The notes under the pieces were generated by a model. That model made no database searches and had not been told where the DNA came from. It worked only from the letters and a program-made list of their open reading frames with translations. The translations under genes were made by a program, and so were the position numbers. A stretch of DNA of 64,000 bases from Blastocladiella emersonii ATCC 22665 (lineage: Eukaryota > Fungi > Blastocladiomycota): NCBI GenBank assembly GCA_025594325.1, contig JANHCV010000001.1, positions 186,001 through 250,000 of the forward strand, read 5' to 3'. Below, piece after piece: positions 46,286 through 55,650 of this stretch (positions within the stretch are counted from its first letter, which is position 1; each line of letters opens with the position of its first letter).

Positions 46286-48066
46286 ATGACCGTCATCAGC
46301 ACCGCCCTACTCTCCGACCTCGCCGAGTGGGTGTCGGACCTCCCGCTAGCCGACGCCTACCACGGCCTCGCCGCCAAGGCCGCCGACCTGATCCCCGCGA
46401 CCATGGCCTCGCCGCACCTCTCGCCGACCGCTACCGTCGCGACTGCCGCCGGCGCCGTCACCGTGGCCGCGGCTACCACGCTTTACCTGCAGCACCTCCG
46501 CGTCCCGTCCGCGATGCGCCACCTGCCCGTGGTCCGCCCGCTCGACCTCGTCCGCCTCCTCGCCAGCGGCAAGTCGCTCCTCGACGTGTGCCGCGCCGAG
46601 ATCGAGCTCGCGCGCGCTGACGCCGTTCGGCGCGGCATCGACCTCGGCGCCGCCGGTATGCCCAAGGTGTGGGCCAGCTGGCTGTTCGGCACCTGGACCG
46701 TGATCGTCGCCAACCCCGCCGATATGAAGCTGATCCTCACCCAGCACGACGCACTCGACAAGGCATACTTCTCAGTCAACGAAGAGCTTGTCGGGTACGA
46801 GAACATCGTGCTCAGTCGTGTACGTTGTCTCTTGCTCGAGCCGCGTACCCGCGACCTGCACTAACGGTCCCGCTTCATCGTACTCAGAAGCACGAGTGGA
46901 AGCGCTTCCGCAAGATCATGAACCCGGCGTTCCGCATGGGCTGGTCGACCTCGCTCTTCGGCGACCTGGTCCGCGTCATGCTCGCCGACTTTGACAACCA
47001 CGCCGCGTCGGGCGCCCCCGTCGACGTGGCCTGCTACATGCAGCGTATGACGCTCGACGCGCTTTCGGTCGGCGCCTTCGGCACCTCGCTCGACTCGCTC
47101 GCGCACCCGGACGGCGACCTCGTCGTCACCTACAACCGAATCATGGAGGTGATCGCCGACCCCATCTACATGACGGTCCCGGGGCTCAAGCTCGTGAGCC
47201 CAACGTACCGCGCCTTCCGCGGCGACATTGTCAAATTCAACCAGCACATCTTCGATCTCATCGACGCCAAGACGCGCCGCGCCGCCGACGAGGGCTTTGC
47301 GTCGCAGGACTCGGACGTGGACCGCCGCGACCTCCTTCAGCGCATGATCGACGCCTCAGCCACGGGCACCGACGACGCGCTGACCCGCGACGAGCTGCGC
47401 ATCAACACCATCGTCTTCTTCATCGCCGGCCACGACACGACCAGCGCCGCCCTGACCTTTGCGCTATACCTCCTCGGCACCCACCCGGCGGTCCAGGCCA
47501 AGGCGCGCACCGAGGTCCTCGCCGTCCTCGGCTCCAGCACCTCGGGCGCGTGCGCCGCGGCCGACGCGGCGTACCCGGACAACGACCAGGTCGCGCAGCT
47601 GCCGTACCTGACGGCGGTCATCAAGGAGACGCTGCGCGTTTACCCGAGCGTGCCGCTGATCCCGCCGCGCGAGACGATGCGCGACGTGGTCCTCAGCGAC
47701 GGCACCGTGCTCCCGCGCGGCACCCGCGTCGCGGGCCACCTGTGCACGGTCCACGCCGACGCCGGCATCTGGGGCGACGACTCGGCCGAGTTCAAGCCCG
47801 AGCGGTTCCTCGTCGGCGGCGACGAGGGGAAGGTTCCGTCCACGCACCCCGGCGCGCACGACTTCGCGTGGGCGCCGTTCGGCGGCGGCCAGCGCGTGTG
47901 TCTCGGCCAAGGGTTTTCGATTATGGAACAGCGCGTCGTGCTCGCGTCGATGCTCGCGCGGTACGAGTGGACCGTGGCGGGCGAGGCGGGGGCGAAGCCG
48001 GATATCAAGCCGGGCGTGCTCCTGCAGCCGCGCGGGATCAAGATCGTGCTCAAGCGGCGGATGTAA
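46286..48066 (+). CDS. Cytochrome P450, two exons
   Basis: I-helix FFIAGHDTTS, K-helix ETLR, PERF and heme motif FGGGQRVCLG. Intron near 46820-46887 joins VLS to HEWKRFRK. Confidence 0.92.
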
Positions 48067-48533: not shown

Positions 48534-51500
48534 TCACGGTCGTGTCGCGCCGACACCCTGGCCATCGCCGCCTTCTTGCGCGCTCTGCGTCTGCGCCGCG
48601 GGGTCCTCGCCCATGCCGATGGCACCGATCTGGCGGCGGATGTCCTGGCACAGGCGGCGTAGGTACGTCTTGAGCGGCGGCTGCTTGGAGATGACGCTTG
48701 GCGGTACCATGAGGAGCAGCAGGCAGTTCTGCTTGATGTCCTCGCGCATGCTCCGCTGCATGCGGTACAGGAAGAAGAAGACGACCACGATCTGGAACAT
48801 GAGCGCGATGTGCAGCTTCTGGTTGATGCCCAGGTAGAAGGCGTACACGTCCCTAGATGCACGAAGGCGGCCGTTAGCAAATGAGCTCGAGGGGAGGTGT
48901 ACGACACCCGCAGACGTACGCAAAGTAGGACAGTTGCAGCTGGAGCAACTGGTAGAAGCCGAGCAGCATCTGGTGCGGCGCGTCGTTGACAAAGTGCGCG
49001 AGCGCCTGGCGGACCTGGTCGTTGGCCGCCGCGTCGGCTGGCGAGAGCGACACGCGCGCGAGGGTGCTGCCCGCCTGGAACGCGTCCTGCAGGACGAACG
49101 CGAGCCCCGTCGAGCTCGTGAGGTTGACGAGCGACGCGAGCTGCGGCGCCGGAGTCGGCGTCGCGTACGGCAGCCGCATCAGGTCAACGAACGGCGACGG
49201 CGACGCGTACATGGCGATGGCGCGGTCAATGGCGTTGAGCTGGGACTTGGCGGTCGTGATGACCGTTTCGAACGCGGGCGCGCGGGACGCGGCCCAGTTG
49301 GCGCCCGGTCGTACCACCTCGAGCGCGATCCCGTTGATCGGGTACAGCGACGTGTACATGTCGAGCGACGTCGTGAACCCGTCCATGATGACGCCGAGCT
49401 CGGGCGCGCCCTTGAGCGCGTTGATCAGCAGCACCGAGAACGACGGGATCACGACGGTCATGTACATGAGCGTGAACACGGCGTACGCGAGGTAGTCGGT
49501 CGGCTTGATCATCATCTGCTCCTTGGCCGCCTTGGCCGCCTTGCGCCGACGCGCCGCGGCCATGAGCGCGGCGGCCGCGTTCGGGTCGCTGGACGGGGCG
49601 AGCACCGCGCCACCGTCGCCGGGCGCTTGCCGCACAAACGACGCGCGGCGGACGAGACGCATCGGCAGCGACTCGGGTTCTGGCACTGGCGGGGGCGCTG
49701 GGACCCCGGACTTGCCGTCCTCGTCGCTCTCGTCGAAGTCCTCGGACTCCTCGTCCATCTCGTATACTTGGTAGGCCTACGGGGTGCCGCGCGTTAGTGC
49801 TGAGGGAAACGACCGTGCGACCGTGGCCACGTACCAGGTACTGGATGACATTGCGCGGGATCTGCGAGATGAGCTGCATCGCCTTGCCGCGCTCGTGGTT
49901 GAGGGCGCGGAGCTTGGGCCAGATCACGAGGAGGTACAGAAACTTTTGCGAAACCAGGTGTCAGTCACAAGAATCGCGCCGGGCGAGGACGTTGGGCGTA
50001 CCACAGCGAACAGGATGGCCGAGATCAGGATCCCGAGCACCCGCGTCTCGTACTTGTACCACGTGGCGCGCACGATGGTCGCAATCTGGGTCGAGAACAT
50101 GGTCGTCGACGTTAGGAACACGTCCTTGTTGGACGTGACGAACCGCCAGCTGCGGTCGGCCGTTGGGTCGCCCGCGACCTGCGCCACGTTGTTGACGGCC
50201 GAGATGAACTGCGACATGGCCTGGAAGTAGTCGGGCATGACGACCGTCGACGCGACGCTCGGGTCCGTGTCAATGTACTGCACGAGGCTCAGGTTCGACG
50301 GCACCGCGAAGCCCTTGTTGAGGATGTTGGACGAGATCGGGATCATCTGCGATGTGGACGCGGCGAGCTGCGCCGACAGCGTCCTGACCGAGGCCGTCAG
50401 GTTGGTCCGCGTGCACGCCGTCAGGAGGTCGGGCGTGGAGCGGCAGATGGGCAGCAGCTCGATGGCCGTGATGGTGTCGCCCATGAGCGCGAGCTGGTTG
50501 AAGCACGGCGTGACGAGCGCGATCTGGCTGCCAATGTTGAGGTACGCGAGCGCGACGAGGATGCACACGGTGCCGCCGAGGAGTAGGAACAGCGCGACCC
50601 ACAGCCGCCGCTGCAGCATGCCGTGCAGCGGGTTGGTCTTCGAGTTCTTCCACACGAGGATCAGCTTCGAGTCGCGCGTGAACCGGTTGCTGTTGGCCTC
50701 CGAGTCGCTGTTAAGCGAACCGTCCGAGTTGCCCGACTGCATGATCGAGTAGCTCCGGTTGAAGCTCGCCGGTCCGCGGTCGTCGCGCGACCCGCTGCCG
50801 TTGCCCATGGCCAGCAGCCCGCTCATCCCGGCCGCGTTGGCGCCCGCCGCGCCCGACACGGGCATCGTGCTGCCAAAGTTGTAGGTCGTCGAGGACATGG
50901 CCGCCTTGAGCTGCGGGATCGAGATGTGCGAACTGCGAGCGGATCCCGAAAACGCCGACTGTGCCGACTGCGACCGCCGCCGCGGGTCCATGATCCGAAG
51001 CGACGGCGAGAGCGACCGGACGGCGCCAATATTGGGCGAGTCGGGCGGCGAGCCGAACGGGTGTGCGGGCGGCGGCGAGCTGACCAGCGGCTCGTCGACC
51101 GCCGTGGTTGCGCTCATCGGCTCGGGGCTCGACGGTGGTGGCGGTGCGCTGACCATCATCGCCGCCGAGGGTACGCGGAACGAGATGGGCGCGGGGATTG
51201 ATGCCGACGACGTGTCGGCGGTAGTGGTGATCTTGATCTCGTACGGGCTGCTGGGGTCGAGCCCATACTCGTCAGTCCCGGGCTGCAGCCGAGTCTCGCT
51301 GCGCACGTTGGACAGCGCGAGCTGCATGGACCCCAGCACGTTGCGGTTGATGGTGCCGCCCCCGGTACCCGTCGTTGGGTGCAGCCCCGATAGTGTGCTG
51401 CCGAGATGTCCATTGTCGCGCAGGTTGCGCAGCACGTCGGCGTGGACCTTGTGCGTGACGCGCGCGTGCGTGATGCGCGCCATGAGGATCGGCCCGTCGT

Positions 51501-54500
51501 CGCTCGTGCGGCGGAGGTACTCGACGACCACGTCAAAGTGCGACCCGTCGCGGTGGACGCCGTTGACGGTCTGCCGCGGGAGATCCGCGGACGTGGCCGT
51601 GGTAGTCGTGCTCGCCGTCACGTCGCCGTCTTCCTCGACCACGTCAAAGTCGGGGAGCAGCTTGCGGATCGACTGGTTCTGCAGCTCCTCGACCGGGAAC
51701 CCGAACAGGAACGCTACGCCGTCGTTGACGCTGACCATGCTGCCCGACTCGGAGATGAACACGAGGCCCTCCTTGGCCATGAGGTCGTCGACGTAGAGCA
51801 CGATCGAGTCGTTGACCTCGGCGCCCGACACGGCCACGGGCGTCAGCGTCTTGTCCTGCCGGTGCATGAGGCCGTAGAACCACTGCTCGGGGTCGGAGAT
51901 GACGCGCTCGATGAGCTCCTTGATGTCGGCGTGCGCTTGGTGGGCCTCGGGCACGGGCGGGAAGACAGCCGCAATGGACCGGCCCGTGAGCTGGGCGGAG
52001 GTCGCGCCAACGAGGTTCGCGGCCGCGTCGCCCCACTCGGCCACGATGCCGGACGCGTTGACCTGGATCCGTTTCTACGCGCGAGTTCATGACGCGTCAG
52101 ACTTTTGGGTCGAAGGGGAAAGGCAAGCCCAACACGTACTCCCTCGAGGGCATCGACCGCGGCCTGTTCCGTGCTCTCGATGCGGACGATGGTGCCCTGG
52201 AACAGCATGTCGGCGCTCGACACGCCGCCATCGAGCTTTTTGACCTTGAGGTTGATGGTGAAGAGCGACCCGTCGCGGTGCAACGCGGGGAGCAGGCGGC
52301 CCTCGGTCGCGCGCTGGATGTTGGGGATTTTGGTCTTCTTGTACCGGTCGAGGAAGCTGTCGTGGAAGGACCGGTACGGCTCTACACGGAACTCGAGAGT
52401 CAGCACTCGAATGCGGTTGCGGCAAGGCAGGTCGAGCAGTGACGGACCGGGCATGATCGTCTTAATGTTCTGCCCGACAATCGACATGCGGTCGTAACCG
52501 AAGAGGCTCAGGAACGCGTCGTTGCAGTTTTTGATGATCCCCTGCGGATCCATGTACACCTCGGCGACGAGCGTACGCATGTCCACGATGGTCCCGCGGA
52601 AGAAGATGTCGCCGTTGATCTACTCGTCGGCTCGGTATCAGTGCACGGACGGCGACCCCAATCTGCAACCGCGGCAACGTACCACTTCCTCGACGACCTG
52701 GAGCGAGATCGGGAACGACTTGCCGTCCTTGTGCTTTCCGACGACTGCGCGGCCCGTGGTCCCGATGACGCGCGAGACGCCTGAGCTGAGGTACCGCTGG
52801 AGGAACGCGTCGTGCTGCGCGGCGAACGACGCGGTCATGAGCAGCGTGATGTTGTTCCCGACCATCTCGACCGGCTTGTAGCCGAACATGGTCGAGGCCT
52901 GGCGGTTGACGAGCTGGATGATGCCGTCGCGGTTGATGAGGACCAGCGCCATCTTCTCGTCCTCGCGCACGGGCGTGACGAGACCGGCGAAGAGGCGCTG
53001 TTTGCCCTTGAGCTCGATGATCTACGAACCGGGCATGGTGGTCAGTTGGGAGTCGGTCCGTCGAAAGCGCTGGTTTACGAACCTGCAGCTCCATCGGAAA
53101 CGACCAACCCTTGGCGTGCAGCCCAAAGGCGGTCTGGCGCATCCCGATGACGCGCTTGACGCCCGTGGCCTTGTACCGCGTAATGTACTCGTCGTGGTAC
53201 GCGCGCCATGGCCACGGCATCAGCGAGTTGATTTTCCTATTGGCGGGTCGACTGATCAGTCATTCCGCTCATGGTCATGCGAAAGAGCAGGGCGTACCGC
53301 TGGATCACGTCGTGCTTGGACTCATAGCCAAAGATCTTGAGCACGCTGCCGTTGATCTCGCACACGACGCCGTTATCGTCGATCGTGATGACCGCGTTGC
53401 GGTTGAACTACGAGTCGAGGTCAGTCAGTCATGCATCGCTGGTGCTAAAGTCGACGGGTGTGAGCGTACCGTGGTCATGTTGGCGGCCCCGACGAGCGCC
53501 GAGGCGTCCTGCTCGACGCCCGCGCCGCTCTTGAGCAGGTCCTCCTCGCGCGCCTTGGCCGCGTCGGCCTGCGCATTGTACGTGGCGGCGAGGTCCTGGT
53601 CGTTGAGCACGAGCTTGGCAAAGTTGGCATACGAGCGCAGGATGTGCGTCGCTTTCGGATACTACGGGACGGAGCAGCGGGCATCAGCGAGGGCCAACCG
53701 TGCTGCCGCATCGAGAGCGCGTACCCGGCTGAGCAGCTGTTTGTAAAAGTCGTCAGCGCGCTTGGTGTTGGTGATGATGGTGCGGACCGCCGACTCGAAC
53801 GACTGGAACCGGATCTTCTTGGACAAGAAGAGAATCCAGAATTGCTGGATCGAGTCGACGCACTTGGCGTGGTACCGGCGCGCCTCGGTCACGTTGCGCT
53901 GGAACTCGACGTACTGCAGCAGGTCGAGCTTGGCGGTGCCCGAGACCACGTTGGCCGTGGCGACCTTCTGCTCGGCGTCGATGAACCGGCAGAAGAGCAG
54001 GAACCGGACGCCGAACGACGGCTCGAGGTTCTTGACCGTCTCGTAGGTCGTGGCCTCGACGGGCGCCGCCATGGCGTTGCACTCGCGCGCCGCGTCGACA
54101 AAGTTGCAGTACAGCAGGTTGATGGTCGGGTTGTTGCTGTTGGCGTCGAGCGCGGCGCGGAGCCACGCCTCGGCCGCGTCCCACGCCATGGACCGGATCA
54201 GCAGCCGCGAGATGATCTCGACCGTGGCCGTGGACCGCAGCGCCCGTGCAATCGCCGGGTTGCGCGCGAGTCGGACGTGGACCTCGGTGTGCGACGGCAG
54301 GTCGTAGTGCACCGTAGCCCGGCGCACGACGGGGCACGCGCTGCCCGACGACACGCCGCCGGCGCCGTGGCCGCCCATGTCGCCGCCGTTCATGTGGGCG
54401 AGCGCGAGGGCCGCGGGACTGTGGCCGGGTCCGGCGTCGCGCGCCGCGGCGGCGACCTCGAGCATGACGAGCTGGCGGAACCGGTGGATGGTCTCGTAGC

Positions 54501-55650
54501 GGTAGCGGGCGAGGCGCATGCCGACCCAGAAGGCGGGCGCGATGCCGAGGATCATGACGTAGTCGAGGCTGCGGTTCTCGAGCGTGTAGTTGGGCGGCGA
54601 CGCGACGCTGACGAGGGCGCAGGCGGCGAGCCAGATGAGCGACATGAGCGAGCCGCTCTGCAGGCGCGTGGTCGACTCGTGGTGGTACGGGACCGTGTAG
54701 ATGAGGACAAACTCGAGGGCGACCAGGGTCACGAGGAAGATGGGCGCCATCCAGGCGGGCCCGTGCACGACGACGCCGAGGTACTCGCCCTCAAGCAGGA
54801 ACACGAGCAGCGCGACGACCGAGAGGAACTGGTACGGCGTAATGCTGCAGGCGAGCAGGTCGTTGGGCGAGTGGCGCAGGCTGACGTTGGTCATGGTGTT
54901 GGCGAGGAGGAACGGCACGAGGATGGCTGTGGCGACGAGGCCGGCGATGAGGGTGGGCAGCACGATGGGCGAGTTGCACGGGACCGTCGAGAAGTGAATG
55001 AGCGTGTTCTTGACAGGGTCGCAGAAGACGGGGCTCAGCAGCGACGAGATGCTGGCCACGGCGAACAGCTTGAAGAGGGCAGCGACGGCGAGCAGCAGCT
55101 TGATGGGCCAGACGTGCTGGAAGTTGCGCTGGTGGAACGAGAGCATGACGAGGACGGTGATGAGCGAGACCATGGCCGTGAGGAACACGAAGATGGCGAA
55201 GACGATGACGAAGTCGGGCATGTAGTATCCGTATCGATACGGCGTGCGGAACTGCAGAAACACAATGACCTGGCCGTAGGCCTTGGTTATAGATCCGCTA
55301 CACGGGGTGGGGTGGGTCAGTGCGGGCTAATCGGGCATGCTCTGCTGCGGAAGATCCCCGTACAAGTTGCTACACGACGGTGGCGAGGGCGGAATTGAGT
55401 TTCGGACCGACTTGCGGTGGTGGTGGGAGCGGGCCACGTACAAGTCTGCTCCGAGAATGAAGCCAGCAAAGTGGATCCAGTCGGCGAAGAGGTGCGCGGC
55501 CGTGACCCAGACATTGGGCCGCAGCTGGGCGCTCGAGGACATCATGACATAGAGGACGAAGAGAAAAGTGTCTTCGAGCTGGCGAAGCCTCGACCGCTTG
55601 CCGCGGAAGACGCTGGACGTGTCGCCCGAGCTTGGGCCCATGGTCGACAT
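48534..55650 (-). CDS. Large multi-pass membrane protein with TPR-like region and five PAS domains (TmcB/FixL-like), multi-exon
   Basis: N-terminal multi-TM block (55650-54500), helical region (AEAWLRAAL..ADDFYKQLL..ILRSYANF), PAS repeats (HDEYITRY, HDAFLQRY, HDSFLDRY plus two more), a Ser-rich linker, then two TM-ectodomain-TM units ending LLLMVPPSVIS...RP*. Confidence 0.8.

Follow-up and report, generated by a model that had tools for sequence, protein, structure and literature searches.

The 64-kb stretch of the Blastocladiella emersonii ATCC 22665 genome analysed here (contig JANHCV010000001.1; hereafter the window) carries on its minus strand a gene for a large membrane protein of the TmcB family with an array of five PAS domains. 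Analysis of its sequence and of a structural model suggests that three of these domains (PAS1, PAS2 and PAS3) are cytosolic PAS domains of the FixL type, each probably holding a b-type heme on an F-helix histidine (His711, His818 and His925, respectively, in the public protein model P0054), and we put the probability of this reading at roughly 0.75. On the same basis the protein is a strong candidate for a gas sensor. Direct heme-based sensors of oxygen (O2) of the FixL type are textbook bacterial devices; to our knowledge they have barely been studied in eukaryotes and none has been characterised in fungi, where the known modes of oxygen sensing are the sterol/SREBP route, heme-responsive transcription factors and 2-oxoglutarate dioxygenases.

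Six-frame translation of the window yields three matches to the heme motif HDx[YF][LI]xRY (53196-53173, 52814-52791 and 52364-52341), all of them within the PAS gene; composition alone would give about 0.0004. The motif peptides quoted in a first-pass annotation of this DNA are all encoded on the minus strand; an intron of 66 nt (52447-52382) interrupts the third, just where that annotation had spliced it. Its description of two further PAS domains lacking the motif also agrees with our Pfam and alignment results, which place PAS4 and PAS5 after PAS1-3. The three domains with the motif are as follows.

53013..53401, minus strand: PAS1, FixL-type; His codon 53196-53194 (His711), Gln at the FixL Arg220 position encoded by 53136-53134.
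52683..52955, minus strand: PAS2, FixL-type, within a single exon (53021-52683); His codon 52814-52812 (His818), distal Arg encoded by 52751-52749.
52176..52571, minus strand: PAS3, FixL-type, split by the intron 52447-52382; His codon 52364-52362 (His925), distal Arg encoded by 52298-52296.

Residues of the pocket are numbered here after Bradyrhizobium japonicum FixL, with chain position 61 of the printed alignment set as His200. With this setting Ile157, Val188, Leu191, Met192, Arg206 and Tyr207, as well as His214, Ile215, Arg220, Leu236 and Ile238, fall at their sites in the FixL literature. In the alignments with PDB sequences, the motif His aligns with His200 in PAS1, PAS2 and PAS3, and PAS4 and PAS5 have no such His. 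Equivalents of Arg206, Tyr207, Leu236 and Ile238 are present in all three motif-bearing domains. The distal Arg220 equivalent is found in PAS2 and PAS3; PAS1 shares this feature in part, having Gln at the position and an Arg one residue before it. PAS2 keeps His200, Arg206, Tyr207, Ile216, Gly217, Arg220 (with a one-residue insertion before it), Leu191, Met192 and Leu236, with conservative replacements at FixL positions 157, 188, 215 and 238, and the FixL residues kept by PAS2 are all present in PAS1 except Arg220. The equivalents of Val188, Leu191, Met192, Ile215 and Ile216 are either kept or conservatively replaced in both of these domains. PAS3 keeps His200, Arg206, Tyr207, Arg220 and Leu236, has Val in place of Ile238, and has Gln at the Ile216 position. 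Two other candidate ligands were considered and rejected. PAS1 of this gene alone has a Met where DosP has its distal ligand, and orthologues do not conserve it. The local His residues of PAS4 are not conserved in paralogues.

Every PDB sequence match of PAS1-3 at E <=0.001 is a FixL, DosP or FG214 heme PAS domain. In the phmmer search with PAS2, FixL heme domains came first (7.7e-16 to 2.4e-14), followed by Escherichia coli DosP/EcDOS (3e-10 to 7e-9), and a single weak row stood below these (E 8e-4), a multi-sensor histidine kinase entered in the PDB (10jx) as the heme-binding PAS of FG214. The pocket half-domain of PAS1 matched FixL at E 3.2e-9, with a single chance-level mannosyltransferase row below it (E 0.27), and that of PAS3, which Pfam assigns to PAS_9/PAS, matched FixL only (E 8.5e-5). 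For PAS2, an AlphaFold model derived from a 108-domain alignment reaches a core predicted local distance difference test score (pLDDT) above 90 and places the equivalent His (His70 of the model) on a long F helix. Foldseek rows 1-20 for this model are FixL heme domains (root-mean-square deviation, rmsd, 0.7-1.4 Å over 80-89 residues, 35-40% identity), which include superpositions at 0.7-0.9 Å over 84-89 residues with 36-40% identity. EcDOS/DosP and FG214 heme PAS domains come after FixL, and rows 1-32 are all heme PAS proteins. The comparison of a predicted structure with the FixL PAS fold, which the first-pass annotation had proposed, thus comes out in favour of its assignment for PAS2. Because the superposition is sub-Ångström and almost gap-free, it leaves little room for a His lying away from the pocket. 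For PAS2 the PAS fold with a long F-alpha helix is seen in the model; PAS1 and PAS3 were assessed by Pfam and PDB sequence alignment only. Taken together, the PDB matches, the PAS2 model and the residue conservation support the prediction that PAS1-3 are FixL-type heme PAS domains. The protein as a whole is not a FixL orthologue, just a carrier of FixL-type PAS domains, as P0054 has no HisKA or HATPase_c match in Pfam; the bacterial proteins among its nearest PAS relatives are multi-PAS histidine kinases.

Conservation of the pocket extends well beyond this gene. A search with PAS2 gave 34,793 matches at E <=0.001, the best 150 of which contain 1027 related PAS domains. Of these domains 993 (97%) retain the His, at least 74% Arg220 and 87% Tyr207. 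In the curated 108-domain alignment, only G33, G47, H70, R91 and G100 are conserved at 90% or more, H70 being the equivalent of His200 and R91 that of Arg220. The His, Arg206, Tyr207 and Arg220 are retained in each of PAS1-3 (the Gln exceptions in PAS1 aside) by homologues with 30-56% identity, both orthologues and paralogues, in Blastocladiella, Sorochytrium, Coelomomyces, Quaeritorhiza and Rozella. Orthologues of four fungal phyla and algae conserve the proximal His, Arg206 and Tyr207 along with the hydrophobic residues of the pocket. PAS1, PAS2 and PAS3 each have a signature of their own, conserved from Rozella to Blastocladiella. PAS5 carries the full motif in Sorochytrium, Quaeritorhiza, Coelomomyces and Rozella (P0169, P0087, P0083 and P0108, respectively), and both the His and the whole F-helix motif are gone in 6/6 Blastocladiella paralogues. 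Judged from these alignments, loss of the PAS5 pocket is specific to Blastocladiella among the sampled taxa, and PAS5 would be the fourth heme-type pocket of the ancestral array. Since the His and the whole motif were lost together, PAS5 appears to be a decaying cofactor site and not a drifting structural residue.

The PAS array is embedded in a multi-pass membrane protein. From the N-terminus, an eight-helix transmembrane (TM) module is followed by the TPR_TmcB domain, five tandem PAS domains, a disordered linker and two units in which an ectodomain is flanked by one TM helix on either side. In all, 12 membrane helices (eight N-terminal and four C-terminal) are predicted by hydropathy and AlphaFold, in agreement with the multi-pass topology proposed earlier. 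The search of the spliced protein with hidden Markov models, another check suggested by the first-pass annotation, recovered TPR_TmcB at 88.8 bits (cut-off 27) after the multi-pass membrane region, which bears out the TmcB assignment made there, and PAS, PAS_9 and PAS_4 matches cover the five tandem PAS domains; Pfam detected no further family in the protein. The parts outside PAS1-3 are listed below.

54499..55575, minus strand: N-terminal eight-helix membrane module of the TmcB family, from hydropathy and AlphaFold helices (pLDDT mostly 80-95); includes intron 1.
53542..53940, minus strand: TPR_TmcB helical domain (PF25474), from Pfam; directly upstream of PAS1, spanning the intron 53724-53662.
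51790..52068, minus strand: PAS4, Pfam PAS_4; without conserved His or heme motif in the orthologue alignment.
51466..51774, minus strand: PAS5, Pfam PAS_9/PAS; F-helix heme motif replaced by an acidic, Thr-rich insert.
50611..51465, minus strand: low-complexity Ser/Pro/Thr-rich linker of ~285 amino acids, from the translation; no Pfam match.
48762..50610, minus strand: C-terminal module of two units, from hydropathy.
48537..48761, minus strand: cytosolic C-terminal tail, from the translation.

A pair of cysteines in the loop between TM3 and TM4 (C164 and C179 of P0054, window about 55010-55060) is invariant in 16/16 aligned family members from fungi, a glaucophyte and green algae, which suggests a conserved extracellular disulfide in the TmcB module. 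NxS/T sequons and basic loops in the translation lead us to place this Cys loop on the outside of the membrane, with TPR_TmcB and the PAS array in the cytosol. The AlphaFold model of the N-terminal 660 amino acids has a pLDDT of 76.8. Its membrane part, folded only as a portion of this model, has no fold match in the PDB and no Foldseek row at E <=0.001; the best rows for the 660-residue model are TPR proteins at E of about 0.04 and above, and VIA-align of the model returns only helical hairpins (residues 527-617). Atlas matches of the N-terminal module are uncharacterised eukaryotic membrane proteins, and assignment of this module to the TRP family (PF06011) was rejected because Atlas TM-scores of 0.33-0.53 are too weak.

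Each of the two C-terminal units comprises a TM helix, an ectodomain of ~170-175 amino acids, a second TM helix and a conserved juxtamembrane helix, and an acidic/basic cytosolic stretch lies between the two units. Blastocladiomycota conserve the module, and parts of it are also shared by Cyanophora, Mesostigma, Rozella and Chlorokybus. It matches no family in Pfam or the PDB, and the two units are not detectably alike (no BLAST match, hhalign probability 7%). A PilJ-like assignment was considered and discarded, its Atlas score of 0.87 being below the reliable range. The juxtamembrane helices have no cyclase match in the PDB, and P0054 has no Guanylate_cyc match even at E 10, giving no sign of a class III nucleotide cyclase. 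More generally, Pfam finds no HisKA/HATPase_c, GGDEF/EAL, cyclase, phosphodiesterase or MCP domain in P0054.

The gene itself is intact and intron-rich, extending on the minus strand from an ATG at window position 55650 to a stop at 48534; the limits 48534-55650 given by the first-pass annotation are exactly the start and stop codons of the coding sequence. Joining the long minus-strand open frames, which shift frame at short gaps, at splice sites gave one frame of 2115 codons. A search of 1.84 billion representative proteins showed that the resulting 2115-residue protein is the same as P0054 (public model H9P43_000122 of B. emersonii ATCC 22665, a "hypothetical protein" of 2117 amino acids) except for two residues. 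These two residues come from a 6-nt micro-exon in intron 1, present only in the public model (CAACTT, window 55369-55364), which has a YAG acceptor before it and a GTACGG donor after it. The micro-exon divides the 144-nt intron 1 of our model into introns of 72 and 66 nt, the other introns being 58-67 nt long; the public model was adopted because the 72- and 66-nt introns fit the narrow intron size range (58-72 nt) better. Donors read GTACGT, GTACGC, GTTCGT or GTCCGT (GTNCGY), with a CTGAC branch-like site and a YAG acceptor. The adopted exons are as follows.

48534..55650, minus strand: whole coding region, 13 exons, from splice sites, open frame and match to P0054.
55650-55442, 55369-55364 (micro-exon), 55297-53725, 53661-53470 and 53407-53298, minus strand: exons 1-5.
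53236-53083, 53021-52683, 52619-52448 and 52381-52140, minus strand: exons 6-9.
52074-50002, 49942-49835, 49776-48920 and 48852-48534, minus strand: exons 10-13.

It is hardly credible that this frame is an artefact of annotation or assembly, or a decaying pseudogene whose motifs are relics. The public annotation, being merely "hypothetical", leaves some room for such an explanation. However, 6.3 kb are open across 12 consistent short introns, the same protein is found in an independent public gene model, five paralogues exist in the genome, and all domains are conserved in orthologues of four other fungal genera.

A cytochrome P450-like frame with an FGGGxRxCxG heme-thiolate motif occupies window positions 46669-48066 on the plus strand. 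It is convergent to the PAS gene and ends ~470 nt from the 3' end of the latter.

The wider family was delineated from the 150 best matches together with P0001 and P0002; 33 of these 152 proteins also share the TPR_TmcB region or the membrane modules. B. emersonii has six copies in its genome, the five further paralogues being H9P43_007579, 007534, 004478, 009995 and 009988. Other fungal members come from Sorochytrium milnesiophthora, Coelomomyces lativittatus, Quaeritorhiza haematococci and Rozella allomycis, algal members from Cyanophora paradoxa, Mesostigma viride, Chlorokybus atmophyticus, Chlamydomonas incerta and C. schloesseri, euglenozoan members from Papus, Entosiphon, Artemidia and Diplonema, and an amoebozoan member from Clastostelium. 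In fungi, as in Cyanophora, Mesostigma and Chlorokybus, TPR_TmcB lies immediately before the initial PAS domain, and the C-terminal part is much less conserved. None of the homologues has a functional name, the fungal ones being called hypothetical protein, PAS domain-containing protein or, in one case, by a merged ndufs8 name. The last is P0169 of S. milnesiophthora, named 'ndufs8, ubiquinone oxidoreductase 23 kd subunit', which has N-terminal 4Fe-4S ferredoxin Pfam matches and probably results from the merging of gene models, not from a genuine fusion. The words PAS and FixL are never used in the B. emersonii genome paper (PMC9730499), and our searches of open-access papers on FixL/FXL in Chlamydomonas, TmcB and chytrid heme PAS found none describing a TmcB and heme-PAS family. 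The uninformative homologue names and the genome paper are consistent with the first-pass view that no characterised fungal example exists.

Seven proteins of 2.5-3.6 thousand residues (P0005, P0011, P0023, P0029, P0031, P0033 and P0089; the named ones are from Euglenozoa) combine TPR_TmcB with tandem His-bearing FixL-type PAS domains, of which 6 to at least 13 are present among the matches listed; by sequence these giant TmcB-PAS proteins are potential multi-heme arrays. An orthologue with 45% identity in the N-terminal module is also found on a 26-kb eukaryotic contig of JGI metagenome 3300047125 (L001:4781-10896), where prokaryotic gene calling broke it up at its introns, leaving separate TPR_TmcB and PAS pieces.

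Comparison with known systems places the PAS array close to two bacterial sensors. The PAS2 model has the same fold as the heme PAS domains of rhizobial FixL (B. japonicum and Sinorhizobium meliloti; PDB 1DRM, 1DP6 and 1D06), at 36-40% identity, and PAS1-3 resemble them in the proximal His on the F helix and in most of the pocket residues. Unlike FixL, the Blastocladiella protein has no histidine kinase or any other two-component output, and its three heme-type PAS domains stand in tandem inside a eukaryotic membrane protein with 12 TM helices. E. coli DosP (EcDOS; PDB 1V9Y, 1S66 and 9BGV), which falls in the same heme-PAS cluster, is the second-best match (3e-10, rmsd about 2 Å); in contrast to the Blastocladiella protein, DosP couples to GGDEF/EAL and uses a distal Met ligand. 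TPR_TmcB follows a multi-pass N-terminal membrane module in TmcB of Dictyostelium (tiny macrocysts protein B; PF25474) just as it does here, and the Blastocladiella subfamily adds to this layout the heme-type PAS array and the C-terminal module with four TM helices. Among the nearest three Atlas clusters, TPR_TmcB is present in a minority of members in two and a common PAS family in none. The protein is thus an uncharacterised carrier of a known kind of sensor domain within a TmcB architecture.

Among eukaryotic proteins, FAP49 and FAP154 of Chlamydomonas have a published layout of seven N-terminal TM helices, a central PAS domain and at least four C-terminal TM helices (PMC9561859), which matches that of the Blastocladiella protein at the level of description. 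Both are flagellar components, abundant in vegetative cilia, and their axonemal levels depend on FAP47 (PMC6548120, PMC9561859). P0175 of Chlamydomonas incerta (2806 amino acids) has TPR_TmcB, C-terminal TM helices and one His-bearing PAS domain, compared with three in the Blastocladiella protein; it was found with P0104 of Mesostigma as query, to which its identity is low (32% over 47% of the query region). At an estimated 295 kDa or so, P0175 would fit FAP49. Isolated FixL-like domains of Chlamydomonas FXL1 and FXL5 reportedly bind heme and O2 (Murthy et al., FEBS Lett, 2012).

The mechanism that we propose by analogy with FixL and DosP begins with each of PAS1-3 binding one heme through its F-helix His. 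A diatomic gas would then bind on the distal side, where Arg (PAS2 and PAS3) or Gln (PAS1) could hydrogen-bond it. On gas binding the FG loop would shift, as would the distal Arg of PAS2 and PAS3; the packing of the PAS domains would then change, and this change would be passed on to the directly adjoining TPR_TmcB domain and membrane module. We favour the TmcB membrane module over the C-terminal units as the recipient of the signal because TPR_TmcB abuts the first PAS domain, and because the poorly conserved C-terminal part is set apart by a long disordered linker. We consider O2 the likeliest ligand, since the distal Arg of FixL is kept; NO (nitric oxide) and CO (carbon monoxide) are possible ligands as well. 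Kinase, cyclase and phosphodiesterase domains are all absent from the protein, so its output probably comes from the membrane modules themselves or from a partner protein. Heme occupancy, ligand, direction of coupling and output are all inferred.

Several points weigh against this proposal. Sequence alone cannot prove that the cofactor is bound. PAS1 has Gln at the Arg220 position, which is common to two homologous PAS1 domains, the rest having Arg, and PAS3 lacks the IIG motif and has an FG loop two residues longer than that of FixL. Pfam finds no known output domain in P0054, the disordered linker of ~285 amino acids separates the PAS array from the C-terminal module, and the signalling step is conjecture, with an N-terminal membrane module that has no match among solved structures.

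Heme might also be bound for a different purpose, with NO, CO or redox state as the signal and NO/cyclic GMP (cGMP) control of zoospore biogenesis as its destination, which we regard as possible, if rather doubtful. Hemes of the FixL type bind O2, CO and NO, and PDB entries in O2, CO and NO states are among the Foldseek matches. PAS1 lacks the distal Arg, the O2-selecting residue in FixL, and a Ca2+-NO-cGMP pathway has been reported in zoospore biogenesis of B. emersonii (PMC10889981, PMC9730499); NO as the ligand in an organism reported to use NO-cGMP signalling is a serious alternative. However, the distal side of PAS2 and PAS3 still has the Arg220 equivalent and the hydrophobic residues seen in FixL, an O2 sensor, this Arg is conserved at 90% or more across the family in the 108-domain alignment, and neither a cyclase domain nor a cyclase-like segment was detected in the protein. 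More improbable still is that the PAS domains no longer bind heme and act as modules for dimerisation, protein interaction or other ligands in a structural or scaffolding membrane protein of the flagellum. Many PAS domains have no cofactor, PAS4 and PAS5 lack the heme motif, and no output domain is present. FAP49 and FAP154, which share the published layout, are flagellar components needing FAP47 for assembly (PMC6548120, PMC9561859). Against this stands the presence of the His in 97% of the related domains and the conservation of Arg206, Tyr207, Arg220 and the pocket hydrophobics across long-diverged fungi, which would be hard to explain without a cofactor. The decay of the whole motif where the His is lost, in PAS5, also argues against it, as does the reported binding of heme and O2 by the isolated FXL1 and FXL5 domains of Chlamydomonas.

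The first-pass annotation had connected the protein with aerotaxis or sporulation, and such links are speculation. A still wider idea, which we consider unlikely at present, is that TmcB-linked heme PAS arrays form a pan-eukaryotic, flagellum-associated system of gas receptors in which O2, bound to the cytosolic hemes, controls ion flux or signalling by the TmcB module and so steers swimming cells along O2 gradients. If this were true, the cells so steered would include fungal zoospores, algal cells and euglenozoan flagellates, and in the Blastocladiella protein zoospore behaviour would have its first identified direct O2 receptor. What the present analysis indicates is that a zoosporic fungus that is a classic of laboratory work has retained six copies of a membrane protein of this type, the one described here having three predicted FixL-type pockets, and that the same architecture of TmcB and heme-type PAS domains runs through many flagellated eukaryotes. 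The protein is therefore a candidate for the sensing of oxygen or NO by zoospores, and it may offer a first functional handle on the TmcB family.

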